This document shows positions 21,330 to 58,275 of a stretch of 64,000 nucleotides of DNA, in pieces. Every line of letters begins with the position of its first letter. Positions within the stretch are counted from its first letter, which is position 1. The notes below the pieces were generated by a model. The model saw nothing but the letters and a program-made list of their open reading frames with translations, was not told the origin of the DNA and searched no databases. A program made the translations under genes and the position numbers. The stretch lies in contig NW_002060960.1 in assembly GCF_000150275.1 (NCBI RefSeq), forward strand, positions 431,702 to 495,701, in the 5' to 3' direction. The stretch comes from Trichoplax adhaerens. Lineage: Eukaryota > Animalia > Placozoa.

Positions 21330-21880
21330 ATTTCATGACTGTGAAGAGGCGAGTAGCTTTGACATCGAATCATAAATGATGTGATAATATATAACAAAAT
21401 ATACAGTATCGAGGAAGTGACCAGGCTAGTGCATCTGATCCAAACAAAAATAAGGCTAACATGATGGATTACGATCCATAACTAGTAATCTGTGAAGAAT
21501 GGATTTTAATTCTTCATTATAACGACATTGCAATTCCATGACAGTGAAGAGGCGAGTAACCTTGGCATCGAACTATAATTCTATGTGATACGATGGCATC
21601 GATTAAGAATATAAAGCGTCGAGCAAGTGGTCAGGAAGGTGTCCGACTAGTACATCTAATCTAGGCAAAAAGAACCCTAAGAATATTTACAACCATCTAT
21701 AACTAACTAATCTGTGTAAAGTGAGCTTTTAGCTCTTCCTTAGAAAGGAATAGCAATTACAAGATAGTGAAGAGGCAAGTAGCTTTGATATCGAATCAGA
21801 TAATCATAAGTGATGCGATAGCATACGTAAAAAATATGAAGTAAGTGGTCAGGAAGCTGTCTGGCTAGCCCATCTAGTTT
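21330..21880. repeat. Three degenerate ~205-225-bp tandem units
   Basis: 'gtgaagaggc(g/a)agta.c.ttg..atcgaa' at ~21341, 21544 and 21766, each followed by 'aagtg..cagg...ctag..catct'. Confidence 0.8.
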
Positions 21881-26750: not shown

Positions 26751-27588
26751 TACAAATCTTAATTGCCATAAGGATCATTAAAATACTAAGCTGCTTTAAT
26801 AGATTCACGAGTTCTCTATTTTTCAGCCATATTGACTCAAGGCTTCCCGTAATTATTAACAGTGGTCGATATCATTCGCAATGGTAGCGAAGACTACGTA
26901 GATTTGTCTGGTTATAACACAGTCTCAATCTCCTAGAATGGTTTTGAGAAGTGAACAATTCTTCTTACTTTCTTTCATGCCGTATATGAACTCAAGACTC
27001 ATAATATGTAATGATCGGAGTTTTAATTCACTTTGGTGGAATAGTATTCTATTGCATGGCTACTATGTACTATCCCGATAATACCGAAAAGGTTATAGTT
27101 TCGACCATACATGTCTAATAGTTAGAGAAAACCTGTAGATACCCCCATTTCTTACTTATCTGTGGTAATATTCTTTTAGTAACTACTAGATAGTGATTAT
27201 AGCTCGTAGATTGCTAAGACATACTGTGAATAATTATAAGCAGAAAATTTCAGACGTTACGTACTGTATTAGGTTACGAGTTTTATAAAATTAGGTCAAG
27301 GGAGTGCAGTTACTTTCACCATGTACAGATAACATCCATGAAAAGTAATATCAGCTATGCTCATTATTACGACTTGGCATGATTACAACCAAATTAGAAT
27401 TCCATGATTAGAATAGTATTAAATAATGCTCGATTTTGTGGTAGAGAAATGCGATTCTTCTACTGATGTTGTAATATTATAAGAAACAGACTATAACTCA
27501 GTTTTCTTATTCAAACTGAAATCTCTAAGTGCTCGTTACAACATTTCGTCAAAATATTGATCAGCTAAATCTTAATAAATTTAATTAG

Positions 27589-33043: not shown

Positions 33044-35643
33044 TTATCGCCATGACATAAAATGTATTAATTCATCTTCGATGTTCGATTTTTTAAAGTT
33101 ATTTACTGTTGATTTTTTTAAATTAAAATGTTTAACGCAATATTGACAAACAACCTAGTAAAATATTATAAAATAGATATTAAAATTAATTATTTATAAA
33201 AATGCTTCATATATTAGTGCAATTATATCCTTATTTATGAGATTTTCCGTAAGCTTCAGACAATACAAACTGCAGTGATTTACTAAGCTGATAAGAGGAT
33301 CACTTACCGTTTTAAGACCGTGATAAATTATATTTATACATCCATAGAATGCAAATACATAAAGTCCCTAGTGATATATAACGTTTATGAAGTATGTGAG
33401 TATTATTATTTAAGTCATAATCAATGTACATTTTCTATTTTCAGCAATTTCATCAAAAAATTACATTTATATTAATTATGCCTAGATGAAATAAAATATT
33501 TCCATATTTTCGTACTGTAGTAAAAATCGATCTTTAATTTATTTAAAAGCAAAACTGCTCTTGCAGCGGAAGATGCGGGTAGCTACTTTTTTTACAAGCT
33601 ATTGATAATATAGAATTTTCATACCTTTATAACGCACACTGCTGCAAAAATATGCTGCAATATTGTATTGTTGAAGGCAATAAATAGCACAAATAGTGTC
33701 CAGCAAATAGCAAGCATTAGCAGAAGAACGGTTGCTTCAGGCAAATATAGTCTATAATTTTGAAATTAGTTTTAATTATAGTCTTTCGGCAAAGTAGGGT
33801 ATTAATAATATGCTAAGTTTCAACTTCATAACATATACTTCTTAATGATATGATATTCATCCTCATGGAAAAAGTTGTTCATAATGCTCAGTTTCCTTGA
33901 ATTCTTATACCCAAACGAAATTGTGATCGCAGCACCCTGTATATTTCATATTTCGCAGAATAAGTCTCTAGGTTAGATTTACAAAATACACTAAATTGCG
34001 TCTAGAAGAAATCATGGCAGATTCGTTTTGATGTAATAATTATAATTACATCAATTTCTACATTGCAGCATATATGGAATTTCATTTCAACTGTACTAAA
34101 CAGTGAAATAATCAATTGATTGACATGGTAGTGATTACAATCACTAGTGCTTAAGTACTAATGGTATGAACAGATTCACTATTCTAATCTACATCTGCAA
34201 TACAGTAATTTAAAACATTAAGCTCATATGTATAGAATCCTAATTTGTCAACATATCATGAACAGATACGAAATGTGTGATAATGCGTCGCATAGAATAC
34301 GATACTGTATAATAATATAAGATATTACACATATATTTATGAAGAAATTATATTAAGATCTTACATTATAACATAATTAATCCTTACCAGTATCATGAGC
34401 ATTATAGAAATAACGAATATCAAAATTATTGGTGGATTAGTTCTCAGCCAGCACCTATAAATTGTTGATCGTCATAGATATTGTCAAACAAAATACAGTT
34501 AATTAATATGAATCTTAGTCAACCATTAAGAATTTAAGCCCTTAACATTACGTAAGAGTAACTACAAGCAGAGCTAATGAAACTAATACATACGTCAATG
34601 TCATTATTTGCACCGATGTGCAATTTAACTTACGAATTATCTTGTATGTAATTATCAATTCCTGCTATATTGATTGTAACAGCAGCGGTTACAACCGCAA
34701 TAGCGATCGCTAAAACTAAAATATAACCAAAACGAATATTTATAGTTCATTATACATATGCACTGGCCATAATAAAAAATTAATAATAAATTATTTTTGA
34801 GATTTTTTCTTCTCTTAACGTTAATATAGTAATCAGTTTACATAAAAAAATTAGCATGGTATATTTGTATATAGATACTACTTACCAAAGGTACATAATA
34901 TGAAATATTTGCAGGCTTTATTTGTATTTGACGCTCTACTTGCAGATTTAAACAAGTAGAAAGTTTGACACAGCATCCAAGCAAAAGATGCCAAAAGTAC
35001 ATAGTGTAATACGGTGGCTAATATTACACATTGTAACTGAAATATATTGTAAAATAGAGTATAAGATTGGTAATATAAGAGATTTAATCCACTAATTATG
35101 AAATACATACGTATTGAATAGAATAGCAGTTAAGAGATTTTATTCCTAGTTACGTGATATCAAACCTTCGATTCAGTTCGCGTTAATCCGAAGATGATAA
35201 TAAGATTAGCAATGAGCAAACAAATGAATATATTGAGGTTGATACTGCTAAATATTTGATGTGTTTGCCTAATTGAATAAAAGAAATGAACATTTATTTT
35301 GAAAAATTAGCTTCTAGCTGAAGTATTCGCTCTAACCATAAGTTTTTTTCTCTGGATAATTTAATTAAAATATAGTAATTACAGCATTAGAAGAACGATA
35401 CTTAACATCGCTTAAAATTCTTTGTATAACTCAAATACAATATTTCATATAACTATGACTAGTTATAACATAAAAGTGGTGAAAATGGCAGTCGTATGAT
35501 AATTTTAGCCATTGTAAAATATTCGATTTAGTAATACTCACATACCTCCAATAAATAACATGAATTGCGATGGTCAATACTAGAAAGAAGCTAGATAAGC
35601 CACAGCCAATGTAAGTTGTAGTTTCCAATTTAATTTTAGTAAT
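33044..35643 (-). other. Adhesion GPCR 7TM (secretin-like) exons and short C-tail
   Basis: Approximate exons: 35643-35545 (TYIGCGLSSFFLVLTIAIH), 35268-35166 (INLNIFICLLIANLIIIFG), 35036-34886 (CVILATVLHYVLLASFAWML), 34715-34634, 34454-34388 (CWL), 33936-33839, 33752-33625, 33367-33309, 33154-33044. Confidence 0.88.
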
Positions 35644-38600
35644 CTACATTTAAATTACAAACAATACCGTATTTAATTGATTAGATTGGCATTTACAGTA
35701 GTTTACTATCAATTGCATAGTAATTCAGTTCGAGATTATTTTACCTTAGTTTAATAGTGAAATTTTAAGCAATTGTTTTGCATCTTATATGAATCAATTT
35801 CAATTCATAAGTAATTTAGTAGTTGAATATAAGGATATCTGATTATAAAAGTACCACTAAATATCATGTCGAACTTTATTTACGTAATGAAACATAAATT
35901 CTACAATATAATTTTGTTGTTAATCATAGTAGTTCATTAGGTAAACTGCTATACAGCTATCAAAAGCTTTTCAAGACATAAACTTATATGTAATAAAAAT
36001 ATGAAGACATTTATGTTAATATAAGGACTCACAGGGACATTAGACAGGATAGTCGCAAAAGTAGTCGTATGATTGCAATAGCAGACGGTATGAGTTAAAT
36101 TGGATTCTAAACCCATCCAGCACCCTGTTGTTTCCCACGTGCAGTAACTGTAATGTTAATTAAATTTTGATAATTAGAAATATTTGCATCAATAACTACC
36201 TATTATTGGCTAGTTAATCATGATTAGTTCGTTTCTATGCCTCAAAGTAACGCTATGACTATTGTTAACAATAATAATAATGTAAGTTGATTAATACGTA
36301 TTATCGTTCCATTGAAATCCTTTCTTAAAAGAGGCAAATTGCAATTAATAATCAAGCATACATAGCGAAAAATTTTTACTTATTTTGAGATTTAAAATTA
36401 ATTTGTATCGCAACTATGCCGCTTTAGCACCTTAATTTACTTATTAATTTGAAAATCGTGAACCTATCTGTAGTTAGAATGAATCAATAATACTGGGCGC
36501 AAAAATATTAATCGTTGAAAACTTACCGGGATTGAGGTTGCCAATATGAACAATGTCGCTGACTGGATTGGCTACTTAAAAATGTCGACTGGAATCAAAA
36601 ATTAAATAGCGGTTACTTCAAATGAAGTAATGTATAATTTGGGCTTTATCATTATACAGAGAACAAAATTACGGTTTCTATTTCAGTAAGACTTTAATAC
36701 ATACTACAATGATTTAAATTTCGGTATTGGCAAATTATTGCAGCACATCCAAGTTAACAATAGTATAATCAGTAAACCTACATTTTTGTTAATAAAGGTA
36801 ATCTTCAACGGCTGATATAAATTTTTATTTATCTTTGGATACATTGAGGTAGAGATAATATGGGAATTAACGGAGTGTGTGCCAGTACTGGTTCCATTTA
36901 TCAACGATATGTCGTTAAAAACGATAAAATTAGATATACTGGTAGCATAAGCATGTAGAACTGTAGTCTGATAGCACTTGAATCGAAATAATATTCGTAT
37001 AAACGTCATGTCAACGTTGACCGCTCATTAAAATACCGGTAATGCTTCAGATTTTGACAATTTATTAATATATTACCGATTAACTTCCATGGTTGATGGG
37101 ATAACTGCATCAAGAGTTTTATATATTACCACCACCAGTTTTTGAACTATAAAATTGGTACATAAGTAGTAATAAGACTCGGATATTACTAAAACAATTT
37201 ACGATTCCTACTTGTATTAAATATTACATCTACGTACACTGATCATGTTGAACGGCTAGGCCTGGAATATTCATTTCAATGTTAGTTGCTAAATGGGCAT
37301 CGTCAACATAGGTAAGATTGCCTACGCTTTCAGCAGAAAAACTCAAATTCCTGACAATAATCGCTGAAGAGTAAATAATTTGGCTTAGATATTGTCAAAT
37401 TTACTCTTTAATCAACTATTTCATAGATTGTAACTTCTTTATAAAATAAAACATTTAATGTCGGTAATATATGAAAGAGTATATTACCTATATTATCGTT
37501 TGTAGTAGTAAATGTTTCATTGTCTGGAATGCTATTTAGTTTGCTTGCAAAATCTTCTAAAGTGTCCATGATTGGAATTTTATTGTTACTTGCATCTCGA
37601 CAAAACTGTAAACAATGAATACATTGTTTTAATGCTATTTGCTTGCTATATCTGTATAAAGCACGAATACTGTATAGCAATACATAAATAGAAGCTAATG
37701 CTTTAAAACAAAAATTTTCTACAAGTATTTAAACCATAATTTATTTATAGTCATGCCTACTTTATTTTCATATTTCCATGCTAATTTGTTTCGTAAGTTT
37801 AGAAGATTACTTTGTACCTTCATGAATTTCTATATAGTATAAGATATGAATTATGAATATAACGCTAAGAGCACCAATTTAAAGAAACAAATAATCTTAG
37901 TAATTGTAATTATGACCTATAAGGATTTAGCTAAATTATGATAACCGTAAAGCATCGTACTTATGAACTTACAGTAAGTGTAGTGGTGTTCACTGTTTTC
38001 GAAACCTGATTAATTTTAGTCATTATTTCTAGTGTTTGGACAATATCACCTCCATACAACGTTTTGTTTGCCGTAGCAGTATCCAACTCATTTATGACCT
38101 CATCTGAAACGCTTGGTCCACTTATGTTCAATCTGTTAGCCTAGAGAACAATTACAAAATTATAGTATGTTTACAGCTTTTAAAAGAATTTTAGACTAAT
38201 ACTTTACAGTATTATTGTAATTACTATAGTTTCTACTCTACTAAATGTATACTTGCAAATATAAAGCCGTAACTTAGCCGATAGTCTATGTGTTTAAAAT
38301 TGTAGCTTTTTCATTGGTTATTACCAAACTAGTCATGGCAGCAAAAGTTGGTGATTTACATCCTGTAGTGTCGATTGATTCCCAAATTGGCAAGCTACCG
38401 CTTCTAATACTGCATAAACGTGAAGCATTACCTATCCCACAAAGATATGACGGTCAATTTCTTATCAAAGTAAATAATATACTTTTCTATTAACTTATGA
38501 CCATATAGGTATCTATCTTTAATATCTAAGTTTAATTCGACAGTAGAGTTAGATGTGAGATAGGCTTAAGATATTAATGGCCCAGATAGTTGTCTATTTA

Positions 38601-41600
38601 GATTACCCTGAATTGAAGAAGGACAAGAAACTAATGCCGTTTTTCCACGATATGTTTTTGGCCATCGCATATCATTTGTTACTTCACCCAAACAAAAATC
38701 TGTCGTATTTTTATCTTTAAAAATATTTATTAGTCAAGCCTTCTATAGTATGCAAGCACGTATAATTAATTATTATCTGTGTATCATTAGCGTAATATCA
38801 TATCAAAAATCTAACCTTTAACAGATATAACTGCCATAGCTGATGATATGGACCCTATAACGTTCGTAAACTGACACCAATGTGATCCATTATCTCCAGT
38901 GTTAACATCTATGATAATTAATTTCCCATAGCCAGGACTAATTAACATGTTATATGCCGAACTAGTAAGTTCGCCATCTTTCATCCATTTAACACTCGGA
39001 ATAGGATCACCTGTTGCTGTACATTCTAGAGTTAAAGTAGCTCCAGCTTTAATAGAAATACTCTGAGGTGATTGGGTGACATTAGGTGCAACTACAATAT
39101 CAAAAGATCATCATATTAATACAGATCATTTTATCATTGCAGTAATTAGTGACATATGAGATAGTTAGCGAATAGCTGCAACGTAAACTTATTACCAGCA
39201 TTATGTGTTTCATATATAATCGATCTACTATAAGGTCCAAAACCAACTGAAGTCGATGCTGCCAATTGTATGGAGTAATTTTGTTGAGGTTGTAAATATT
39301 GCAATGTATGCTGAGTAATATTACCAACAATTATAATATTGTCAACAATCGGTTGTTTTAATAGGTTATATTTAATTCGATATCCGGTAATGATGCCGTT
39401 ATGATCATTTATAGGAGGTACATTCCATACAACCATAGCTGAGGTAGCACCCTGAGCGGTAGGTAATATTCTTATATCTACTGGTGTGGCGCTAGGTACT
39501 GTAGAATTATGTCAAGGAATTATTTACGCGGAATACGGTAGTATATTTATGATCTAATAAAATGACTTCAGCTCGATTTTGTAGAAAATAAAGCATTCTA
39601 GTAACATTGTGAGTTATTTATATTACTTAAATTACGAATAACACCAAGGTAATTTAAAAGACAATACAATATGGATTAAAACATACCTGATTCTAAAGTA
39701 TTGATGATATATTCGTTACTTCGTGGACTTACACCAGCTATTGTAAAAGCTTGTATGGATATCTTATATTTTGAAAAATACTTCATGTTGAAAACGGTAT
39801 AATTTCTAGAGTTACCAAGCAAGAACGTCTGATTTTCGTAGACTGTTAGATTGCTAACAAATTTATTGTTAGCATTATCAAGAATAAAGTGATAACCGAG
39901 TATAACTCCATTGCTAAATCTTTCAGAGATGACCTTAATTGCAAGTAATGAAATAGCATTACAAATAGCTCGAGAAACATCGTACTGTACAAAATAGGAT
40001 TTACTTAAATCATCTTATACAATGCTGACGTACTTGCCATCCGATATTAACACTGTTATTACTAACAAGTGAAATCAATTGCACCATAGGGCTTTCACTA
40101 GGTGCTATATTTAGTGATAATTTATAAAATGATTATACTTAGTACTTAGAAATAGATCACAAGTATAAGCATGGCATATCATATAATACAAGGATAGGTT
40201 ATAATGACATCGTTATCATCACCTGCTTGGCGTGTTATCACAGATATGACTGGACTTTCTGGCCCTAATCCGATAATTGTTGCCGCTTTCATGGTAATAT
40301 TGTATACAGTAAACGGTGATAAATTCATTAGTAATTTTGATGTTGTTGTAGCATTGACTGTAATGTTGCCGTAATCGTTCCACCGGGAAGAATTATAGCT
40401 AATCTTATAAGCGATAATAATGCCATTACGATCACTTAGTAAAACTGGCTGCCAGGAAAGGGTAATAGATGAGGCAGATATAACTAAACTTTTCACATTC
40501 TGAGGGTAGGATTGAGGTGCTAGAACATGACAGGAATCATTTACTTTAGCTAATTAGAAATGATTAATGATTTTATTAAGACTATCATATTTCATGCTAA
40601 AATCAGTTTTAGTTTAAACCTGCTTGATAAGTCGTTGATGATAGTGTAGGACTTTCAGGGCCAAAGCCGATCGCTGTTGCTGCTTTTATACCGATATTAT
40701 ATGACGTAAATGGACTTAAATGAGTTAATTTTACCGTAGTCGTGGAACTATTAACCATGAAATCTTTATTTGTATTCCACTGTGTCGAATTGTAATATAC
40801 CATATATGATACGATTACGCCGTTGCGATTGAAAAGCGCTAGTGGTTGCCATGAAAGTTCAATGGCAGTCGCAGAAATTACTCGTGAAATTATATTTTGT
40901 GGATAGGATCTGGGTACTATAATTCAATTAGAGTACAGTAGTATATTCCCAAAATTAGAATCAATAGAAAGCATCCGTTAGAAAATCAGACATTTAACAA
41001 AATAATTAATTATTATAGAAGACAGAACATTTTCTGATTATAATACGTAAAATTTTATTATATTTACGAGAATGGATCAAACCTGATTGATGTGTTGTAG
41101 ATGAAGTAGACGGACTTGCTGTCCCAAAGCCAGCTATCGTTGCTGCTTTGATGCTGATTATGTATTTAGTATAAGGAATTAAGCCATTCAATATCGCCGT
41201 AGTAAGTGACGAATTGATGTGAACTACACCACTATCACTCCACTGCGTAGAATTATAGTAAAGCTGATACATGATTATAACTCCGTTTCGGTCAAATAAG
41301 GGTAATGGCTGCCATGAAATGTTTATTTCTGCAGCTGATATTGCTGATGAATTCAAACTTGGTGGATATGATCTAGGCACTGTTTGATATCATTATCGAA
41401 AAGTAAATTTATAAGTTATCTATGAAACTAAATTTTATGATATCTATACTTTAAATATATAAAACCGCATAAGCTATGAGTGTATTTAGAAAAATTATAA
41501 TTTTAATACCCTAAAATTTTTGAATCAATTCTGTAAATAATTATATATATGCATAATTAATCAAACCTGCTTGATGTGTTGTCGATACCAAAGGAGGACT

Positions 41601-44600
41601 CTTAGGTCCAAAACCAATGATTGTGCTAGCTCTAAAGGTAATCTTATATGTCGTATACGGAATCAAATTTTGCAGCGTTGCTGAAGTTACTGAATTATTA
41701 AATTGCAGGTAACCATGATCATCCCATCGAGTAGAATTAAAGTATATGCTATATGAGGTAATGATTCCGTTACGATCGTATGGTGAAAGTGGTTGCCATG
41801 AAATGTATATTGATGTTGGCGATATCGAAATGGCGTTATCATTTTGTGGATATGATCTTGGAACTAATTAAATAGTAAAGAACTTGTTGGTAACATAAGA
41901 TACATAATTATGAAAATATTTATCACTGCTGTCTAAGAAATAATATGCATAATCGAAAACTTGGTTCTATAACTACGGTACAATCACTAGAAATAGCATT
42001 GTAGATTTTTGCTGAAATTCTAGCTATACGCGCAACTCTATTGATCCGTCATCCATTTATCTCATTTTGTGATAGATAAGTGAATATTTAAACGTCTTAT
42101 TCTATTGCATTCTTTATTTTACTGTATTATTTATACCACGGTATATTATTGTTTTATGATATCGACTTATCTCCTTTCGTGATCAAGATAAACTTAATTG
42201 CTTGACATTGGTAACGCTATTTGTTTTACTTATTTTCGCTTTATTATACAATCTTTTAATGCTTTATCTTTACCTGACTGTAACGTGGTTCCAACTACAT
42301 ACAGACTGCCTGGTCCAAATCCAATTGCTGTAGCTGCGTATACAGTGATTTTATACGTTGTATACGGCGTCAAACTTGGAATAACTACAGATGTTACTAA
42401 ATCATTAACGCGAATAACTCCATCAGTTCGACGTGATGTAGCATTATAAACCACTTTATATTCTGTAATGATGCCATTTCTGTCGAGTGGAGATAATGGC
42501 TCCCATTTGACACTTATAGATGTAGACGACAAATTCGAAATGGTAAAATCGGGTGGATACGAGCGTGGTGCTGTAACAAATGGTATAATTTATTATTAAC
42601 TTAAACTCAACTTTGTGATCTAATTCAAAACACAACCGTTTAAGCTATTCGAATAATATATAAACAGTGGTATTTAGTAAAGGGAAACTTAGTTATTTAA
42701 GTACGGTATCTGATAAAATCTGCGTTATAACGCACTGCTTATAGTTTATTAATAAAAGCCATCTTATAGAAACACAGCTTGGATGGGAACTCAGATTACT
42801 TTAAAATAGTATCAATCTAATATGGCCATTGTACGAAATTTTTAAGATGCGATGGCTGCCTTAACATTGGTTGTAACTCTATGTTCAAATTGTAATATCA
42901 AATCTATCATAGTTACGAACGATATCAAGAATTGAGTTTCCTTGATTTACGTACTGATATCAAAGGCCATAGTATTAAATGAAACATTTAATTCTTACCC
43001 GCTTCATAGGTCACAACCGATACATCAGGACTATTTGGCCCAAATCCTGCAATAGTAGCCGCTTTTACACTTACATTATAAGTAGTATAAGGTATTAGTT
43101 CCAGTATTATTGTTGATAAATCGGAATCACTGACTTGAATTGAACCGGTATGGTGCCACTGCAAGGATTTGTAGCTAATATTATATGTTAAAATAATGCC
43201 ATTCTGATTGAGCAGCATTAATGGATGCCATGAAACCTTGATCGAATTAGCGGTTAGCATCGTTGCATTGAGATTAGGAGGATAGGAACTAGGTACTGAA
43301 ATCACATAAATTAATGTTGATAATCTTATGACTATAGATACGATTTAAGAATAATTATTTGTACTGTAGTATTCTAGCTCGTATAGTAATTTTTGATTTG
43401 TTTTGATATATTTTACCTGTTTGATATGTCGTAGCTGATTCTATTGAACTTGCAGGCCCGTATCCTGCGATAGTTGTAGCTTTAAGAACAGCATTGTAGT
43501 TAGTAAACGGAATTAAATTTCTTATAGTAATATTCATAATCGAACTGTCCACGTATATGGTAGCATGATCATTCCATTTAGTTGAATTATAATTTATGCT
43601 ATAGGAATTTATAATGCCATTGCAATCAAAAACTCTGAGCGGTTGCCATGCCACATAAATCGAAGTTGGCGATACAGCAGTAAAGTTAATATTTTGAGGA
43701 TACGAACTGGGTGCTACAATTTATAAACCAATCAAATAAATTATTAGTTATGTTTTATGCAAACAATTCTTATAAGTTTAGCGTATTTTAAATCGTCGAT
43801 ACTGAATAATAGTTAATATTACAGATAAGCAAACACAGTTTTTACTGAAGAATTGAACAATTGATAGAGGTTATTTTAATTATATTCTGAGATGAAATTA
43901 TACAGCTTAAATTCTAAGTCCCAATCATTAGTCGATAATTAATCATTTTTAGCGACAAATCTACTAATAAAATAATTTATAAACATCTTTACTAAGTTTC
44001 TTTTGATATTGAGGCAAAGGTTTTAGAAGTACTTAATGTTTACCGGCTTGATAAGTGATAGTCGATGTATATGGGCTATTCGGTCCAAATCCAGCGGCTG
44101 TCGCTGCATTGATTGTCACATTATATATGGTATAAGGTATTAAATCATACAATATCGTATTAAAGGTTGTTCCATTAACTTGAATTATGCCTGTGTGATT
44201 CCATTGTAAGGAATTATAACTAACATTATAGGTTATAATAACACCATTGCGATTAAACAATATTACTGGCTGCCATGATATATTGATGGAATTTGCCGTC
44301 AAAGCAGTTGCGTTGAGATTGAGCGGATAAAAACTCGGCGCTAAAATAACCATTATGCATATAAATGGTAATAAGCTTTAATAACATCAACTAAAAGATA
44401 TTTCATTATACTTACTTTAAAATTCTCTTAATTGATTACATTAAGAGTCTAACCTGATTGATAAGTTGTAGACGATGTTACTGGGCTCTCAGGTCCAAGT
44501 CCAATAACAGTTGCAGCTTTAAGAGTAACATTATACGTAGTAAACGGAATTAAATTTCCAACAGTAACGTTTGTAGTTGAACTGCCAACTTGTACAACGC

Positions 44601-47600
44601 CATTATCATTCCATTGAGTCGAATTGTAACATATGGTATAGGAAGTAATTATACCGTTGCGATCAACAAATCTAAGTGATTGCCATGTAATATAAATGGA
44701 CGTAGATGACAAAGCGATAACAGTGATATTTCGTGGATAAGAACTTGGAGCTACAATTAATAAACACAGAGTTACATTTTATTAATTTAATAAAAACTTT
44801 CCATTATATAATACGTTAGTAGTCGGCATATTACAGTAAATACTGTTTGCAAATAATAACGTAATACTATAGATTTTGAGTATGTATAGCCGTAGCCAAG
44901 CGTATACTGTTGATATTTAGTTACAATACATATCAGTATGTATAACAATCACCAAAAATCATAAAATCTCTATATATGCAAATATATATGTACTCGCTGC
45001 TTTCATTTTACCTGCTTGATAAGTTGTAGCTGATATTTCCAGACTATACGGTCCAAATCCAGCTATAGTAGCAGCACTTACTGTCACATTATATGCACTA
45101 TAGGGCAACAGATTATGTAATACTGCTGAGAATGTTGAACCATTGACTTGAAGTACACCCCTATGATTCCATCGCAGAGAATTATAGCTAATATTGTATG
45201 CGATTATAATACCATTACGGTAAAGTAGCATTATTGGCTGCCATGAAACATAGATCGAATTGGCTGTCCATGCGGTTACATTGAGATTGGGTGGATAAGA
45301 GCTAGGCTCTGCAATGAAATACATTCAGAATGGTAATATTTTAAGGTAACAATGACATTACGATAAAGTTGATACTAGCACTTCTTTAATGACAACAAAT
45401 AGTCTAACCTGATTGCTGAGTTATAAAAGAAATAGTAGGGCTTGCAGGTCCAAATCCTGCGATAGTAGCAGCTCTAAGAGCAACATTATACGTAGTAAAC
45501 GGAATTAAGTTCTGCAAAGTCACGGTTGTGATTGAGCCATCAACTTGTAAAATGCCGTTTTCGTTCCATTGAGTTGAATCATAGCTTATATTATACATGA
45601 TTATAACACCGTTGCGATCGAGAATCGGGGGTGGCTGCCAAGTTATGTCGGCTGTTACAGGTGACGAGGCAATGGCACTGATCATTTGTGGATATGAGCT
45701 CGGAGCTTTTAATTTTCAAACAAAAATATTAAAACATAAATACGCACGGTAGTGGTTAATTTTAAGTTACTAATTAAATTTAGATATAATCTGCTATATT
45801 CTAAAGAGGGGTAATCTTTAATGTTAAAATTTATTACACTTTATTTTTGTTAGTTAAGATTATTCACCACAATAAAGAATTAAAAATATGTCTAGGCATA
45901 ACGATTTCCTGCTGAAAAGGGATAACTAATTGTATTAATATAGTTAGAATAGATGGATTATCGAGTTACCGTCTTCATGGCTTGTAGCATTAATAATGTC
46001 ACTAGCTATACCGTTATAGCCATACTTTATGTTATATGGTATGATTTGGTAGAAGTAAGTATGAGATTCATGTAGGTTTATCGAGTAAATTTCCGTTTCA
46101 AGTCCGTCGTATATTAAGGTCGAGTTATCGATTGTCCCATTTGTTGAAGAATTAGAAATCCATTGATACACACGATAGGCAAGAATACCATTTTGAATGT
46201 TTGGCGGTTGCCACACTATTTTAATAGACGTGGAATTATAGCCTAGAGCATACGGATTTCTAACAGAGCTTGCAGGAGCTATGGAATAATATAAGCAGCT
46301 TTTAAAATTATATATTAAAAGATCCATATCAGCTAATCACATAATATGCGCCAACTCACGTATAAATGATTTTAAATTTCGGTTTATCATTACATCTTAT
46401 TGCTTAATAATCCGTTCAAAATAATTCCAGCGCCTCATTAAACACAATTACCTGATTCATCTGTCCTGACTGATAAAACTTCTTTTCCGCTAACTCCAAT
46501 GGCATTTCTAGCCCATATTTGCAAGAAATAAGTAGTATATGGTGCAAGATGATAAAAAATTGTTAAGGTGCCGGTACTAGTAATTATACAGTCATTATTG
46601 CTTAAACTTGACAAGCAAGTACTGTTTAATGTTATGTTTAAATGATTATAAAGTCGAACTGTATAGTTTGTTATTGGAGAAAATCCATCAAATGCAGGAG
46701 GTAACCATGACACTGTCATATTTGTAGCTGTTACGTTCGATATATGTGGTTGTCGTATAGACCATGGCGATTCTACCCAAATACGATTAGTATAAAAATG
46801 ATAAATTAGAATACGCATAATGTTAGTAGTACCTTTGTGTAAAATAGATATTCCTACAGTAGTATTAAGATATAATCACAAGTGCATTAAATACCTTGAA
46901 TCATCACTGTGATCTCTGGAGATGTAGAGGAAATATAACCATTGCTAATATTACATAAGTAATTACCAGCATCTTCTCCTATCGATGAATTTAATTTCAA
47001 CTGACCAATAAATTCAGTTCCATTATTAATAAGTATAAGCGAAATAGAATATCTATTTTGTGTCAGTATTGTATTATTTCTTAACCAAGATATTTCAGTA
47101 ACAGGTGGTAGGCTACTTCCACGGCATTGTAAGATCATTGTGTGGTTAATAGGTACCAAATTTGGGGTTATGGGATTTTTAAAGCTTGGAATAGCTAAAG
47201 TATATCCGGTGTAAACGTTGAAAACTTAAGATTACTTTCTGAATATACCGAATCAAACGTCTAATGCCATATATTCACGAAGCATGAAGACACTGTAGTT
47301 TCGCTACACATACAAAATTTATAATTTAAATCAGTAAGTTATGTTAGAGTAACGGCTTTGAAAAACAACAAACACCGCGAATGAACTGTTATACATGTAC
47401 TTAAATTTAAACAAAAATAAGTAAATAAAGTATCTTCTAAGCCATTTGCAATTCTGTTGCATTGCTGGTAAATGGAATTACTATGATCATTTAAAAGTAA
47501 ACATCTATGAGTAAAATATGAATAAACTATAAATACGGTTGTATATGTATATAAAAATTACCAAATGTAAATTGTTTTTAACTGTGCTATATCTGTTACG

Positions 47601-50600
47601 GTCAATCCCGATAAAAGTGAATAATTGTAAACTGCGACGATAAGCTATTATGAGCTAGAAGATGCTAGCGGTATTGCTAATTGCTATAGCTTTATTAACG
47701 ATGTTATTATAATTATTGATAATGCTTACTTAATAAAGAATTCCATTCAGTACCGTACAGTATAGTTAGCCATGAATTTAGCATCAATAATCAAGATATC
47801 AAGTGTAGTAACGATATGTAACTAATAAGAATATTTGAAGAAATTTAACTTATATCTTTTCGTCAAATAAAGCATTGACTTTAAAAAAATTTTTTCTGCT
47901 TACCAAAAACTGTGACAATCGCGCTGTTACTAATAGTAATTCCTTCGGCAATGCTATAACGGCACTGATATGATGCTTGATCGTCTAAGGTTACATTAAT
48001 GATAGTAATGCGACTGTAGATGTAATTATTCCGAATGAACGTGCTGTTGTTGACATCTGACATAGGATTTCCATTCTTGAGCCATGTTATACTTGACACT
48101 GGATAGCTAGTCCCGTTACAATTCAAGGTATAGTCTTTACCATATAGTATATTGGCGCCCTGTGGATGTTGTGTTATAGTAGGATAAACTAGATTCAAAA
48201 AGTATAAATTATTAATTATTTAAATACTGCTCTTTCTAAATATTTTAAAATTGAGCTCTTTATACTAGTACTAATATCAGTTTCTATCATTATTTTCATT
48301 TATAATTACTAGTAAAGTTCCGTTCAAATGAACAGGTATATATTTTTCACAAAGCAAGACATGAAAAGGAAATTCACAGCCAGATTGTTTCTTACTACTG
48401 TATATATGCTTCTTCTGGGAGCTATACTGCTAAATCAGTTCGATAATATTAATTTCCTGTTAGCTTACAATCTTTTAAAAAATCACATGATATATCATTA
48501 TACAGTAAGGTACCTCATCCTTACTGGTAATACTGATATGAGTGCTTACGCCTTAAAACTGTATTTTCTCTTATATATAAGCGCAAATGAAATCTTTATG
48601 TAAATTCTGAACACGAGTATATGTTCTTCAACGTGACTACCGAGTGATAAATCTTCGACCACGCACCTCTCTAAAGTGCTTGGCTTAAATACCAGCAGAG
48701 AATCAATTTAAAACGCAACGTCTCTCTTATAAAATTCGCTTCTTAAAGCAGACCTCAGCAAATAATTTTAAAACTAATTACTGTGGAATTTATGCAACGT
48801 AAGATGCAATAATAAGGAGTACTGTATAATAAAGTAGGCTCAGTAACAGCGTATAACAAATTACAAGCCTCGGATAATGTATCTGAAAATTTTGCAAATC
48901 ACTACGACTGCAGTATCTCTTAATTCACTTCTAAATAACAGTATTTACCAGTTGGTAAAGAATTCGTAGAATCAAATTATATTAATGCGATAGTACTTGT
49001 GCAATGCTATCAGTGGTATTTGATCGAAAAATTACGATCCTGGTCCCAACTACATAATATAATCTAACAATAAAAGTTAAATATGCAGCTTAGTAAAAGC
49101 GATGATACTTCATGATCTACGAGTGCATTAATTTAAATTAAATAATTAATTAATGCGATACTATTATCTTTAATAAGTTACATTTCTTAAATTATTAGCG
49201 TGTCGTTATTCTTACTAGTGATATTTACTCAAAGCCGTTACCATGAGAATTCTTACATTATTCATACTTCCAAACTATGCAAGATAGCACTTGCAGCACC
49301 TGAGTGTATTTCACTACAATATTTCTTTCCTATCTTAATTTATACTGTGTTTAAATACTTTTCTCGTATAAATTAATATCTAAAAATTAGAATAGTAGCT
49401 AAATACTGAAGCTAGGTAATTATATAACAAGAAAACTACTCTTTAAGTTATGAAATATTTCGGTCTCTAAAGGAAAGATTATATAAGTCTGATACCGATA
49501 GCGACTTAAGCGTCTGATAAGCGAGAAATGACTCGATTTTGTAATAAGTAAATGAACCTGCGAATGATTATAGTTTAATATTACACCAGTAGTCCTAAAT
49601 ATAATTATTTTATGCAGAGCTAAATTAATTCATACATTAAGCATTCGATCTAAGTTCAACTCGAGTAAACTAAATAGTAATAAATTTATTCTAATTTCAT
49701 CGATATAATTATATTAAAAAATATCATAGTGTGATATTTAAATTATTTTATTCACATACATCAATTATAGACTCACCGATCACTTTTATCGATGTGTTAT
49801 TACTTCTTGTCGATCCAACTGTGTTAACGTATTCGCATTGATAATTCCCCATATCGTGTATAAACGTTTCTGTAATAACTAAACGACTATAAATATAGAA
49901 ACCTTCGACTATTGTCGTATTCTCATAGTTTATAACAGGGATTCCATCTTTTAACCAAGTAATAGTAGATATCGGCGAGCTTGTCGCGTTACACTCTAAT
50001 ACCGTCGTGTTACCTTCATACACAGATATGTTTGAGGATTGTTCAATGATTCGCGGCGCATCTATAGTCCGTCAAAATTTAAAATTATACCCAAATTAAT
50101 ACGATATGTGCATAGTAGATATCGATTAACAACAATAAGGCAATCATTTGTTTCTGTAAGTTTTTTGTATGATTCTCTTTCTGTAATTAATTATGCTACA
50201 ATATGTTATCGTCAAGTACAAGTTTGAATCATTTCTTATGGAGAATAATCAAGTTTTATTCTAAAATTACAATATTATTATTAACGCTTATATACTTGTA
50301 TTTTATGATAGTAACTTACATGGATAGATTCTAACAATTCGTATACCGCCTAAGTGACCGTATCCCGCGCTATTTTGACTCCAGCCGTAGTTAATTAATC
50401 CGTATAATGCGTTAGAATCGTTATGAGTTATTCTTATTCCGCCAATTGTAACAGGAACAGATGCAGCAACATAAGTTTCGTTAACAGTATTTGTAAGGAT
50501 TTGTCGCCATGTAATACCTTGTAGTATTACTCCGTTTAGCATCAATCCGTTCTTATATTTGTTTTGTATAGTAATCAACGCATAATTTCGATCAGTTCCT

Positions 50601-53600
50601 ATATTTGTAAGAGCAGACGGCAAGAATATATTGTAATCTCGACTATATTGTTCTATTGCTGGTACAATTGTCATGAATGGATCGCTTTTAGTATTATCTA
50701 CTTGGCCTCCTTTCGCGAATTGAATAACTAAGCATGGCTTATCGCATGTAACATACGAACTATCACCGCTGTTTAACTCAAATTCTACAAAATCTCCTCG
50801 AGACAGTTGATAATTTTGAGATGTTACTTTAACACTTACTGTCGTATTATCATGACCGCCGACAACACGATATACATCACCAGCTGTTCTATCAGCGAAT
50901 GTCGATATAATATAGTTTTTACCAAGACGTGTAATAGGTAAATGAAATTCTTGTATACTACTACAGCTTCCCACACTACTAAATATACGTGTACATTCAT
51001 TACCAGTCAAAACTCCAACATCTTTATCGGAATAGACAATAGCGCCAGATATGTCTGTTGTCGCTTTTAAATGAAATCCTTGCGAAGATTGTAAAGTAAT
51101 AGATAAATTTCTACTTCTTGAATAATATTGACCAGAATAGTAAACACTCACTGGGAAACTGATATTAAGATGTGTGTCGGCGTACTTAGCGATTATTAAT
51201 AGTTTGATATTAGAGTATGGTTTATACGCAGCGACAACATAATTCTTATCGTATAGATGACTCGGTAAAACTAATGTTGAAGCCATTTCAGGATAATCTA
51301 TATAAAAACTACTAACTGTTATATCTTCATCTGAGACGATATGAAAGATTTTAGAAGTCAATTCAGAATTAAAAATAAGTATAGTACTTGCGATTGTTAG
51401 TGTTTTTGATTCATACGATGCAATAGTGTATTCATTAACCGTATTAAGAAACTTATTTGTAACATTGACAACAGCTGGCTTATTATAACTTGTTATGGTA
51501 AGATAATATGATTGCCTGGTATTCATTCTTGGATAACCCACAAAAAACTCTCGTCCCGAACTTTTCTCAACTTTCGAATCTAGTAAACATAAGAACATAC
51601 ATATCTTAGTTAATTAACTACTACACAGTACATTGTAATCTTATCACCAGTACTATCTCTATTATATTTAAATTTAACAAACTTGTCGTTATAATATTAC
51701 ATAAATATTTATATAAACAATAATATACTCTATCGTAAAGACATCATCAGTTACAGCATAGCTAAACAAGTTGATGTAATTAAGTATTATATGTATTAAT
51801 ATAACTCTTGGTAATATCATAAACTATATACACGATATACGATACTAAAATACTACATGTCACTGTACGAGCGACTGTGAAGAGTTAAGTAACCAAGTTT
51901 AGCGAGTTTAATATTTACATATAGTGATCACAATTACTCACACTAGGAATCACTGACGTTACAATATGATGGCGTGTAATAGTTATTCTTATATAATAAT
52001 TGTTTATACTACAAGCTCTTGTAGTCGTAGTTCTAGCTAAAAGTAGATCGAAAGTGTACTGAAATAGTTCTGTGAATAGACATAATGTAGTCTGATTAGG
52101 TAATAACAATTGATACATGTGTATGTCTATGAGTATTATTGTAAGATGATTTATCAATGTTAGCCGCTGTCGACGTGTATAACATATATAACATATATAT
52201 AAGCCCGACAGATAGTTGAGTAAAATCAGCTCGCTAGCTTTATCTGATGTAAAGTTATAAGCTCATAAACTATTGTCTCTATTTGTACAAGTTAACCTTT
52301 GCGTTATCTTGTTACATAGCTGGCTTATGATACTGTAACACTGAGTTTCAATCTCGAAACTAAACTTTGTGTTTATGTAGTATTGATTTATATGCAGTAT
52401 TATTAAGTACAAGGTATCAATTATAGTATTGTTTAGGAAATCATGTAAACCAGTTATCAGTTACAAAAGTATTGTAACTATATTTGTTATAGCTACTTTA
52501 AAATATCGTTTTAACAATTATAATTTTTACTGTAACTAGAAATATCTAAACTATGATTCTATGCATTATACAGTACTTACCGTAAACAGTCACAATTGCA
52601 TCTTTACTTATAGCCGTTCCTTCTGTATTTCTATAACGACATTGATAGAATCCTCTATCGCGTACAGTTGCTTCTCTAACAGTGATACGACTATATATGT
52701 AAATGTTATCAATCGATGTAACATTATCGTAATTCGATATCGGATATCCGTTTTTGAGCCACGTAATGCTAGATATCGGATTACTTTTTCCATTGCAATG
52801 TAAAATCAGAGTGTTGCCATAGATAACGTCGGCGTTTTGTGGATGTTGCGTAATTACAGGATATACTATATTCAAATTAGATAGATAACAATAACTTAAT
52901 TACACTATTCAATGTACAGTATGTAATAAGTTTATAGAGTACAATAAGAATATCGAGACTATACATAAATAATATAGACTCACCGATCACTTTTATCGAT
53001 GTGTTATTACTTCTTGTTGATCCAACTGTGTTAACGTATTCGCATTGATAATTCCCCATATCGTGTATAAACGTTTCTGTAATAACTAAACGACTATAAA
53101 TATAGAAACCTTCGACTATTGTCGTATTCTCATAGTTTATAACAGGAATTCCATCTTTTAACCAAGTAATAGTAGATATCGGCGAGCTTGTCGCGTTACA
53201 CTCTAATACCGTCATGTTACCTTCATACACAGATATGTTTGAGGATTGTTCAATGATTCGCGGCGCATCTATAGTCCGTCAAAATTTGAAATTATACCCA
53301 AGTTACTTAATACGATATGTGCATAGTAGATATCGACTAATAACAATAAGGCAATCATTTCTTTCTGTAAGTTTTTTGTATGGTTCTCTTTCTGTAATTA
53401 GTTATACTACAATGTGTTATCGTCAAGTACAAGTTTGAATCGTTTCTTGTGGAGAATAATCAAGTTTTATTCTAAAACTACAATGTTATTATTAACACTT
53501 ATATACTTGTATTTTATGATAGTAACTTACATGGATAGACTTTAACAATTCGTATACCGCCTAAGTGACCGTATCCCGCGAGATTTTGACTCCAGCCGTA

Positions 53601-54790
53601 GTAAATTAATCCGTATAACGCGTTAGAATCGTTATGAGTTATTCTTATTCCGCCAATTGTAACAGGAACAGATGCAGTAACATAAGTTTCGCTAACAGTA
53701 TTTGTAAGGATTTGTCGCCAGGTAATACCTTGTAGTATTACTCCGTTTAGCATCAATCCGTTCTTATATTTGTCTTGTATAGTAATCAACGCATAATTTC
53801 GATCAGCTCGTACATTTGTAAGAGCAGACGGCAAGAATGTATTGTAATCTCGACTGTATTGTTCTATTGCTGGTACAAATGTCATGAATGGATCGCTTTT
53901 AGTATTATCTGCTTGGCTTCCTTTCGCGAATTGAGTAACTAAGCATGGCTTATCGCATGTAACATACGAACTATTACCGCTGTTTAACTCAAATTCTACA
54001 AAATCTCCTCGAGACAGTTGATAATTTTGAGACGTTACTTTGACACTTACTGTCGTATTATCATGACCGCCGACAACACGATATACATCACCAGCTGTTC
54101 TATCAGCGAACGTCGATATAATATAGTTCTTACCAAGACGTGTAATAGGTAAATGAAATTCTTGTATACTATCACATCTATCCGTACCTTTAGGTATATA
54201 TGCACATGTATTACCAGTCAAGACTCCAACATCTTTATCGGAATAGATAATAGCGCCAGATATGTCTCTGCCCGCTCTTAAATGAAATCCTTGCGAAGAT
54301 TGTAAAGTAATAGATAAGTTTCTACTTCTTGAATAATATTCACCAGAATAGTCAATACTCGCTGGGAAACTGATATTAAGATGTGTGTCGGCGTACTTAG
54401 CGATTATTAATAGTTTGATGGAATAATATGGAATATACGCAGCGACGACATAATCCTTATCGTATAGATGACTCGGTAAAACTAATGTTGAAGCCAATGC
54501 AGAATTAAAGATATAAAAACTACTAACTGTTATATCTTCATCTGAGACGATATGCACGATTTTAGAAGTCAAATCACTTGCAACAATATTCATAGTAGTT
54601 GCGAATATTAGTGTTTTTGATTCATACGATGCAATAGTGTATTCGTCAGCTGTATTATCAAACTTATTTGTAACATTGACAACAGCTGGCTTATTATAAC
54701 TTGTTATGGTGATATATTGTGCTTGGGTGGCACTCAGTTTTAGAAAACCTATAAAAAACTCTCGTCCCGAACTTTTCTCAACTTTCGAAT
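33044..54790 (-). CDS. Giant adhesion GPCR: [IgGFc-binding-Ig-Ig]x2, Ig, 15 FN3, Ig, HRM, GAIN/GPS, 7TM (about 3,500 aa; signal-peptide exon upstream of 54790 not found)
   Basis: Continuous chain of phase-compatible GT-AG exons on the minus strand from 54790 to a TAA at 33046-33044. All ectodomain modules are phase 1-1. Domain blocks are listed as separate features. Confidence 0.85.
36034..38699 (-). other. HRM + GAIN domain with GPS motif
   Basis: 38699-38607 and 38431-38325 give FCLGE..MRWPKTYRGKTALVSCP..GNASRLC..WESIDTTGC (HRM). 38140-37973 contains LYGGDI. 37829-37761 contains SNLLNLRNKLAW. 37605-37488 contains MDTLEDFA. GPS reads HCSYW...WETTGC...TVCYCNHTTTFATIL (36148-36034). Confidence 0.9.
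38816..39091 (-). other. Membrane-proximal Ig (I-set) exon of the adhesion GPCR, absent from the ORF track
   Basis: APNVTQSPQSISIKAGATLTLECTATGDPIPSVKWMKDG..., phase 1-1 exon. Confidence 0.88.
39196..46772 (-). other. Array of 15 fibronectin type III modules
   Basis: Exons 46772-46452, 46278-45970, then eleven exons of exactly 297 bp (45705-45409, 45308-45012, 44750-44454, 44340-44044, 43713-43417, 43295-42999, 42570-42274, 41863-41567, 41379-41083, 40916-40620, 40519-40223), a split module (40104-40034 + 39933-39687) and 39498-39196. Motif W.P...RNG.I..Y...L.P.T.Y...A.T..G.GP.S. Confidence 0.92.
46895..47194 (-). other. Ig domain exon
   Basis: LQCRGSSLPPVTEISWLRN...DAGNYLC, phase 1-1. Confidence 0.88.
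47904..51579 (-). other. Second IgGFc-binding-Ig-Ig unit
   Basis: Exons 51579-50320 (1260 bp; SSGREFFVG, STLVLP, GKNY, SDPFMTIVPAIEQY, GYGHLGG, FCGBP N-terminal-like), 50061-49777 (Ig), 48188-47904 (Ig). Confidence 0.85.
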
Positions 54791-54990
54791 CTAGTAAACA
54801 TAATAACATTGATATCTCAGTTAATTAACTACTACACATATCGTAAAGACATCATCAGTTACAGCATAGCTAAACAAGTCGATGTAATTCAGTTTTGTAT
54901 GTATTAATATAACTCTTGGTAATATCATAAACTATATACACGATATACGATACTAAAATACTATATGTCACCATACGAGCGACCGTGAAG
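49768..54990. repeat. High-identity intragenic duplication (~49768-51895 vs ~52975-54990), including intron sequence
   Basis: The Ig exons differ at about 3 of 285 nt by eye. Introns 50062-50319 and 53269-53530 align almost base for base. The upstream intron flanks also align, apart from an indel. Confidence 0.92.
52581..54790 (-). other. First IgGFc-binding-Ig-Ig unit
   Basis: Exons 54790-53531 (1260 bp), 53268-52984 (Ig), 52865-52581 (Ig); paralogous to 51579-47904. Confidence 0.85.
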
Positions 54991-57900: not shown

Positions 57901-58020
57901 TGATTATGTGGATTGCTGTATTTGATATAGTCAAGTTACTAAGAATACATATTTTCGTGAAGCTAATATTAGATGATTGATAACTACTCTATTCGAAATT
58001 GTTGATAACTAATATTAGTA

Positions 58021-58275
58021 TTATCGTAAAATAATATTCTAAAAGTATAATATTATAAGAACATAATCCGTCAGCAAAGCAACGGGAGTTTGTATAATTA
58101 TAACAACGTAATCCGTTTGCATAGCAACGCAAGGCCGAGTCACGTTTGAAGTATTATTGTAAAACAATATTCTATAAGTATAATATTATAAAAGCATAAT
58201 CCGTCAGCAAAGCGACGGGAGTTTTTGATATTATAACAATGTAATCCGTCAGCATAGCGACGGGAGTTTGTACTG
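58021..58275 (+). mobile_element. Cluster of four Helitron-3'-end-like hairpins in a ~133-bp tandem duplication
   Basis: ccgtcagca(a/t)agc(g/a)acgggagttt at 58068, 58201 and 58246, with a degenerate copy at 58113. Stem CCGTC/GACGG. Confidence 0.5.

Follow-up and report, generated by a model that had tools for sequence, protein, structure and literature searches.

A probable giant adhesion G-protein-coupled receptor with FCGBP_N heads in the placozoan Trichoplax adhaerens

Introduction

G-protein-coupled receptors of the adhesion type (adhesion GPCRs) are mostly orphan receptors, and it is the ectodomain that determines what is sensed. A stretch of 64,000 nucleotides from the genome of T. adhaerens (NCBI RefSeq assembly GCF_000150275.1, contig NW_002060960.1, positions 431,702 to 495,701 of the forward strand), referred to here as the window, raises the question of whether such an ectodomain can be headed by an IgGFc_binding domain (FCGBP_N), a domain common to the vertebrate mucus protein FCGBP and to surface proteins of gliding bacteria. 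The minus strand of the window contains two exons for heads of this kind, followed by a long series of immunoglobulin (Ig) and fibronectin type III (FN3) exons and then by exons for HRM, GAIN, GPS and seven-transmembrane (7TM) modules. Do all of these belong to a single gene, and does the receptor carry one head or two?

The best explanation, held with good confidence, is that one gene encodes a giant class-B2 adhesion GPCR in which one or two fast-diverging heads of 420 residues stand on an Ig/FN3 stalk, the mechanism being in part inferred. The receptor has about 3,000-3,600 residues and the gene is transcribed. What is new is the FCGBP_N type of head on an adhesion GPCR, which was not found reported; the gene belongs to a placozoan-expanded family of such genes.

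The gene model

The model is a minus-strand chain of 43 GT-AG exons, running from 56262 to 33044 within AT-rich surroundings (about 32% G+C), which together make up a single open frame some 3,596 codons long (Table 1). In a scripted frame test the joined coding sequence was free of stops for 3,597 codons, or for 3,596 with the better-supported last two exons, and the frame is 2,987 codons when either three-exon head unit is left out. The encoded order of domains is a signal peptide, an IgGFc_binding head, two Ig domains, a second head, three Ig domains, 15 FN3 domains, a further Ig domain, HRM, GAIN/GPS (with His-Thr-Thr) and the class-B2 7TM domain. A preliminary description of this DNA, made from its sequence, had proposed that scattered open reading frames splice into one protein with an Ig/FN3 stalk leading to HRM-GAIN-GPS-7TM, and the 43-exon frame bears this out. 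The extent that it gave, 33044-54790, has to be enlarged, as the gene starts upstream at a small signal-peptide exon, which opens with Met-Met-Ala-Pro and continues with a hydrophobic stretch.

Pfam matches were obtained from stop-to-stop frames between 56 kb and 33 kb, scanned singly, exon by exon. The heads occupy two 436-codon frames with IgGFc_binding matches at 54824-53517 and 51613-50306, each covering profile positions 2-297 of 297 (PF17517), and the head exons have exactly the 1,260 bp that had been predicted for them. All six Ig exons score above the Pfam cut-off, as do 13 of the 15 fn3 units, the second unit and the split fourteenth (which is interrupted by a phase-0 intron) falling just below; the earlier count of six Ig and 15 FN3 modules is thus upheld. 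Splice-site analysis found the Ig, FN3 and head exons each to be bounded by AG and GT and to be of phase 1-1. The small HRM, GAIN, GPS and transmembrane (TM) exons were located by tblastx conservation against paralogues and form a unique phase-compatible splice chain. Three junctions named in the preliminary description, 47904/47194, 39196/39091 and 36034/35643, agree with the splice-site model, the first being present in RNA contigs as well. Public models divide the gene, TRIADDRAFT_60863 (445 residues) being the head 1 exon alone, and the 43-exon model corrects this fragmented annotation.

Table 1. Exons and duplicated units of the receptor gene, in window coordinates
Feature	Position	Strand	Evidence or remark
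Exon 1: signal peptide with its start codon, 64 nt (21 codons + 1 nt)	56199..56262	-	Direct reading; phase-1 donor G|GTCAGT
Exon 2: head 1, IgGFc_binding (FCGBP_N), 1,260 nt	53531..54790	-	Pfam E 5e-63; splice sites; AlphaFold (AF2) pLDDT 94
Exon 3: Ig1	52984..53268	-	I-set/Ig_3 E 1e-12; 98.9% nucleotide identity to Ig3
Exon 4: Ig2	52581..52865	-	Ig_3 E 5e-14; strong phase-1 donor ACG|GTAAGT
Exon 5: head 2, IgGFc_binding, 1,260 nt	50320..51579	-	Pfam E 9e-61; RNA-covered; acceptor joined to signal exon in X8
Exon 6: Ig3	49777..50061	-	I-set E 1e-13; RNA joints 50320/50061 and 49777/48188 (X8, X14)
Exon 7: Ig4	47904..48188	-	Ig_3 E 3e-14; RNA joints on both sides
Exon 8: Ig5	46895..47194	-	ig E 3e-10; RNA joints 47904/47194 and 46895/46772
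Exon 9: FN3-1	46452..46772	-	fn3 E 3e-11; acceptor 46772 in RNA
Exon 10: FN3-2	45970..46278	-	Weak fn3, 21.6 bits (cut-off 25); position-specific best match in six paralogues
Exons 11-21: FN3-3 to FN3-13, eleven 297-nt phase 1-1 exons	40223..45705	-	fn3 E 1e-12 to 2e-16 each; splice sites
Exons 11-15	45705-45409, 45308-45012, 44750-44454, 44340-44044, 43713-43417	-	
Exons 16-21	43295-42999, 42570-42274, 41863-41567, 41379-41083, 40916-40620, 40519-40223	-	
Exon 22: FN3-14, first part	40034..40104	-	Sequence reading, phase check
Exon 23: FN3-14, second part	39687..39984	-	fn3 24.1 bits, partial domain; 62% identity to paralogue C1402a
Exon 24: FN3-15	39196..39498	-	fn3 E 2e-12
Exon 25: Ig6, adjoins HRM	38816..39091	-	I-set E 2e-16
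Exons 26-27: HRM (38714-38607, 38431-38325)	38325..38714	-	24.9 bits, first half; 53-70% identity to paralogues; splice chain
Exons 28-33: GAIN (38140-37973, 37829-37761, 37605-37488, 37363-37238, 37146-37077, 36938-36782)	36782..38140	-	GAIN 21.4 bits on exon 28 (cut-off 26.5); splice chain
Exons 34-35: GPS (36588-36527, 36147-36033)	36033..36588	-	GPS 33.2 bits (cut-off 22.5)
Exons 36-42: 7TM (35643-35546, 35268-35166, 35036-34886, 34715-34634, 34454-34365, 33751-33625, 33367-33308)	33308..35643	-	7tm_2 30.2 bits on TM2-3 exon (cut-off 20.6) and 17.2 bits on TM1 exon; paralogue conservation; splice chain
Exon 43: predicted short cytoplasmic tail and stop codon	33044..33154	-	Donor ACG|GTAAGT at 33308, acceptor 33154, both phase 0; splice-site reading
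Tandem unit, copy 1: head exon, intron and Ig exon, preceded by 163 nt of intron	52963..55001	-	93% nucleotide identity to copy 2
Tandem unit, copy 2	49754..51893	-	93% nucleotide identity to copy 1

The adhesion-GPCR core

The membrane-proximal part of the protein is that of an adhesion GPCR. The exon for TM2-3 scores above the 7tm_2 cut-off, and 22 of its 23 matches in the PDB are adhesion GPCRs, the other being a weak match to Smoothened (E 0.2) and none a secretin-type receptor. Seven hydrophobic exon segments are kept in the paralogues. The GPS match lies directly before TM1, and its exon finds adhesion GPCRs only in the PDB (ADGRL3, ADGRG6, ADGRD1 and ADGRB2/3). This exon reads Cys-Tyr-Cys-Asn-His-Thr-Thr-Thr-Phe-Ala-Thr-Ile-Leu, with the His-x-Thr kept in eight of nine paralogues; H-X-S/T is the canonical autoproteolysis motif (PMC13062082). 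In the same exon, the residues Thr-Thr-Phe-Ala-Thr-Ile-Leu are a putative tethered agonist. In the space expected for the GAIN domain lie six exons, all conserved in tblastx against the paralogues.

A family of related genes

The gene is one of a family. Genome-wide there are 23 IgGFc_binding exons at about 15 loci, and 64 GPS matches in the assembly of 105.6 Mb and 1,414 contigs. At ten or more of the roughly 15 head loci, including the gene studied here, a GPS lies on the same strand, 5-21 kb downstream, a pairing with an estimated chance of about 0.006 per random locus. A match to the TM2-3 exon also lies downstream at six of the ten loci with head and GPS. The preliminary description spoke of one receptor; about ten loci in the genome pair a head with a downstream GPS, and the gene is not unique.

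The architecture was mapped with window exon peptides at nine loci, with C1412:787-801 kb, C1369, C1414:8.55 Mb and C1410:1.17 Mb lying outside the mapping. Six of the nine are collinear paralogues (C1402 at 1.63 Mb, C1396, C1401, C1402 at 1.68 Mb, C1410 at 0.7 Mb and C1412 at 2.8 Mb), in which the order is one or more heads, 0-16 Ig, 5-15 FN3, Ig, HRM, GAIN, GPS and 7TM; their first two and last two FN3 exons and their last Ig exon match position by position. The remaining three, whose stalks are of another kind, likewise contain a head and a GPS. Among the mapped members the studied gene has the longest FN3 array, and C1396 contains two heads with Ig exons before each.

At C1412:787581-801744 four tandem IgGFc_binding exons lie within 14 kb, in larger frames (637-715 codons) and with no GPS match nearby, which is possibly a non-GPCR use of the head.

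Transcription

RNA and DNA contigs of four runs (X4, X6, X8 and X14) were mapped on 46650-52649. X8 and X14 come from different studies, X14 being a declared RNA library, and the contigs of both are confined to exons; those of X4 and X6 run through introns without joints and are thus DNA-like. The RNA joints, with GT..AG ends on the minus strand, are 50320/50061, 49777/48188, 47904/47194 and 46895/46772. Record 21 of X8 (2,729 nucleotides) starts some 2 kb within the FN3 array, crosses FN3-1, Ig5 and Ig4 and reaches into Ig3, the portion of about 2 kb that lies downstream of 46650 being taken as exons 11-21. Because this record spans both, the head/Ig part and the FN3 part are carried on one RNA.

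Isoform ratios from contig depth (about 230-270 for head 2, about 118 for the head-1 type and 112 for constant exons) were rejected, because depth is not comparable and words shared between the copies confound it.

One head or two

A receptor molecule carries one or two heads, and single-headed isoforms probably exist. The two head units form a tandem duplication (Table 1) in which the flanking introns are about 93.5% identical and the Ig2 and Ig4 exons have no nucleotide similarity. The strongest rival, which has a real if somewhat less than even chance of being correct, is that the units are alternative cassettes and each receptor has a single head: the signal exon would be followed by head 1-Ig1-Ig2 or by head 2-Ig3-Ig4, or unit 1 would be skipped, so that the locus would offer a choice of recognition surfaces. 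Record 24 of X8 points in this direction. It contains the first 185 nucleotides of head 2, with zero mismatches, and a loose end of 103 nucleotides that has no match within the mapped stretch and whose printed letters, read in reverse complement, give the end of the signal exon; hence, in this record, the signal exon is spliced straight to the head-2 acceptor, without head 1, Ig1 and Ig2. The joint from Ig2 to head 2 occurs in no run. As the exons involved are all of phase 1-1, the reading frame survives the skipping of either unit, and by eye the translations of Ig2 and Ig4 look like counterparts, so the units resemble equivalent three-exon modules. The differences between the heads, moreover, fall mainly in clustered patches.

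Several observations hold this rival in check. The junction is covered by a single run, and both head exons share an identical first 38 nucleotides, longer than the 31-letter assembly word used by Logan, so record 24 is possibly mis-threaded, though equal coverage should break the contig there. Head-1-type letters occur in another X8 contig placed on head 2; therefore head 1, or a twin of it, is transcribed. In the paralogues Ig exons stand before heads, C1396 having the order Ig-head-Ig-head, and a splice from Ig to head is likewise present in P0151, P0003 and P0004, which are public predicted models. A search for contigs encoding P0151 or P0003, with records of the window's own genome excluded, found none. 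The description of a receptor tipped with two heads thus goes beyond the evidence: both full head exons are in frame, and the one RNA contig that crosses the head-2 acceptor omits head 1, Ig1 and Ig2.

Very improbable, by comparison, is that two or more separate genes are present, one for a secreted head-plus-Ig protein and one for a downstream FN3-stalked adhesion GPCR. The public annotation keeps the pieces apart, as with TRIADDRAFT_60863; the model TRIADDRAFT_62494 of a related scaffold ends after its second head, though at the scaffold end; and FCGBP_N proteins are typically secreted (PMC4948705). RNA contigs, however, connect head 2, Ig3, Ig4, Ig5 and FN3-1 with about 2 kb more, and for the link from head to FN3 the reading as separate genes is already contradicted. 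Nor does the model have a stop between the Ig and FN3 exons, and no second signal peptide or start exon was noted there; the same order of domains is found in six paralogues, and a head lies upstream of a GPS about ten times in the genome.

That the tandem heads are an artefact of the 2008 draft assembly, with two alleles placed side by side, would accord with the 93% identity of the copies and with the small unplaced scaffold C1337, whose further variants of both heads indicate that haplotype confusion does occur at this locus, but it is the least likely explanation of all, since contigs of the independent DNA-like runs X4 and X6 span a large part of the unique spacer 51675-52649, C1337 likewise has two tandem heads, 3.7 kb apart, and the trailing Ig exons of the units have no nucleotide similarity.

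Scaffold C1337 (28.6 kb) is a mosaic twin of the locus when compared with window positions 27393-61855. Its bases 1-2401 match the 3' end of the receptor gene (33905-31506, 97%), those at 14975-21518 align with the upstream region together with the signal exon (61855-56159, 96%), and bases 23060-28654 hold the two further head units (93-96%). It is either a second near-identical gene copy, in tandem somewhere, or an uncollapsed haplotype. The main X8 RNA contig has the letters of the second C1337 head at three positions in 51141-51145, within head 2, and is identical to head 2 of the window further upstream; because it mixes both sets of letters, the expressed heads in the X8 culture are mosaics of two assembled variants.

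The head domain

The head belongs to a large family: a representative protein library contains 5,268 relatives with E values no higher than 0.001. The closest are RDD35776.1 of Trichoplax sp. H2 (87% identity) and TRIADDRAFT_62494, TRIADDRAFT_61038 and TRIADDRAFT_60085 of T. adhaerens. Among the best 150 of the 5,268, a crude method found none with a 7TM-like hydrophobic cluster or a match to the GPS and TM exons of the window, and the ESM Atlas held plain IgGFc_binding clusters only. Two weak tests gave little more: a homologue search with head 2 returned three short public models and no RNA-derived open reading frames, and one with the 2,140-residue 'Hemicentin-2, partial' of Trichoplax sp. 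H2, at lengths up to 3,745 residues, returned that protein itself only. No match to VWD, C8 or TIL was found in any exon frame scanned by Pfam, and besides the heads the exon chain is wholly occupied by Ig, FN3, HRM, GAIN and 7TM.

The two head exons differ at 109 nucleotides and in 69 of 436 codons. Across the four near-identical copies, those on C1337 included, the amino-acid differences are strongly clustered, with none of 10,000 permutations reaching the observed value, and this patchy divergence fits diversifying selection on a few loops. Because the patches are clustered and mostly change amino acids, they fit a ligand-recognition surface.

An AlphaFold (AF2) model of head 1, built with a 47-sequence alignment, is predicted with high confidence to be all-beta (pLDDT, predicted local distance difference test, 94.4; pTM, predicted template modelling score, 0.93). 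In VIA-align its N-terminal sandwich (the first 105 residues), which holds several of the variable patches, is nearest to TM1070 (Z 11.1, with a root-mean-square deviation of 3.8 across 101 residues); the Anabaena sensory rhodopsin transducer follows at Z 8.1. A PDB sequence search with the head returned no match, and Foldseek with the head model returned generic beta-sandwich rows only, with TM-scores of 0.1-0.15.

Placozoans are not known to have antibodies. The function of FCGBP_N is not understood (Lang et al. 2016, PMC4948705). The Pfam name of the domain is taken from human FCGBP, and the mucus- or microbe-binding role assigned to the head in the preliminary description is an extrapolation from that name.

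Weighing the evidence

A number of points weigh against the receptor as proposed. The Pfam scores come from single exons and not from the joined protein; GAIN, on one exon, and HRM, on half a domain, both lie below their cut-offs, since single exons carry only part of either domain. The joint 52581/51579 from Ig2 to head 2, which the preliminary description had listed, is absent from all four mapped runs, only one of which is informative there; in that run, X8, what precedes the head-2 acceptor is the signal exon. As the RNA covers 46650-52649 only, the connection from FN3-15 to the 7TM domain is inferred from the open frame, short phase-compatible introns and the six collinear paralogues. Separate transcripts for the IgGFc/Ig part and the FN3-7TM part had been named as what would count against a single gene; head 2, Ig and FN3 proved to lie on one RNA, and the step on to the 7TM domain depends on the three arguments just given. 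In the head, the ratio of non-synonymous to synonymous differences per site (pN/pS) among four near-identical copies, two here and two on C1337, is 1.4-1.6 over codons 1-210 and 0.4-0.9 over codons 211-419, the values above one being based on small counts and explicable by patchy gene conversion. Finally, matches of the predicted fold below Z 8, such as carbohydrate-binding modules and macroglobulin domains at Z 5-7, within the common range, are common arrangements and give no functional evidence.

Proposed mode of action

In the adhesion GPCRs that have been studied, the N-terminal fragment stays attached by way of the GAIN domain, and a ligand or a pull frees the tethered agonist and thereby activates the 7TM domain. 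A similar course of events may be envisaged for the giant FCGBP_N-headed receptor. The head would bind something outside the cell, the likeliest candidate being a surface that bears glycans, for instance food biofilm, microbes, mucus or another cell. The Ig/FN3 rod would act as a spacer, roughly 80 nm long if extended (an estimate from typical domain sizes), that keeps the head far from the membrane. The N-terminal fragment, presumably held by the GAIN domain, would respond to ligand binding or to a pull by exposing the tethered agonist behind the GPS, and the 7TM domain may thereby be switched on and signal through G proteins, as other adhesion GPCRs do. Both autoproteolysis and activation by a tethered agonist are suggested for this receptor by analogy.

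In a very early-branching animal that lacks nerves, muscles and immune cells, FCGBP_N has come to sit on at least ten adhesion-GPCR chassis, which provides a tractable setting for asking what FCGBP_N binds and how a placozoan senses biofilm, symbionts and neighbours. The patchy, mostly amino-acid-changing divergence of the heads points to a likely binding surface. The more interesting question is whether the patch-variable heads serve alternatively. It is conceivable, though rather unlikely, that these head cassettes (two here and two on C1337) amount to a diversified recognition system, built from splicing choice combined with variation in alleles or copy number and with diversifying selection that acts on a small number of surface loops. 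Were this so, a nerveless animal without immune cells would have a polymorphic receptor for microbes, food or self/non-self that is coupled to G-protein signalling, with a logic closer to that of Dscam or of allorecognition loci than to that of an ordinary adhesion GPCR.

Comparison with known receptors

The membrane-proximal part has a vertebrate parallel. ADGRA (GPR124/GPR125) has the architecture LRR-Ig-HRM-GAIN-7TM (LRR, leucine-rich repeat), and the studied protein has the same succession of Ig, HRM, GAIN/GPS and 7TM, a likeness in domain order; unlike ADGRA, it has no LRR and carries in addition 15 FN3 domains, five extra Ig domains and the FCGBP_N heads.

A full-text literature search on IgGFc or FCGBP in connection with adhesion GPCR, 7tm_2, GAIN or placozoa turned up no paper that describes such a pairing, and the proposal of a lineage-specific receptor stands within the reach of the tools used. 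The closest relatives in concept are the placozoan GPCRs of the secretin/adhesion type with C-type-lectin heads, a placozoan peculiarity that has been interpreted as a link from pattern recognition to endocytosis and signalling through GPCRs (Kamm et al. 2019, PMC6321704). They come from the same phylum and likewise have a recognition-type ectodomain on a class-B 7TM domain and a lineage-specific expansion; their head, in contrast, is a C-type lectin, no long Ig/FN3 stalk is described for them and IgGFc_binding is unmentioned (PMC6321704).

As in FCGBP and other FCGBP_N proteins (PMC4948705), a signal peptide is followed by a full-length FCGBP_N domain at or close to the N-terminus. FCGBP is secreted and continues with VWD-C8-TIL, whereas the studied protein continues with Ig/FN3 and GAIN-7TM. 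Placozoan FCGBP_N proteins without VWD have been reported, in a paper whose main text does not contain the words GPCR or 7tm (Lang et al. 2016, PMC4948705).

The stalk modules are less unusual. In the portions concerned with ectodomains, surveys of adhesion GPCRs from sponges and other non-bilaterians name fn3, Ig and HRM as modules before GPS-7tm_2 and stress exon and domain shuffling (Krishnan et al. 2014, PMC4302439; 2025 eLife survey, PMC12716839); those portions describe neither an FCGBP_N head nor an array of this length. It had been remarked that no vertebrate adhesion GPCR subfamily is known to have such a head or a long FN3 array. The placozoan host makes the vertebrate comparison moot, and FN3 and Ig are known in sponge and other holozoan adhesion GPCRs, as the same portions of these surveys record.

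Repeats and polymorphism at the locus

Upstream of the gene lie short tandem repeats with periods of 133 and 45 nucleotides (58017-58269). A 252-nucleotide tandem repeat occupies 61170-61855 with 2.7 copies at 94% match, and staggered BLAST matches suggest that more copies are present in C1337. Within the intron between Ig2 and head 2, an X4 contig is without the 36 nucleotides at 52157-52192, an indel polymorphism between cultures.

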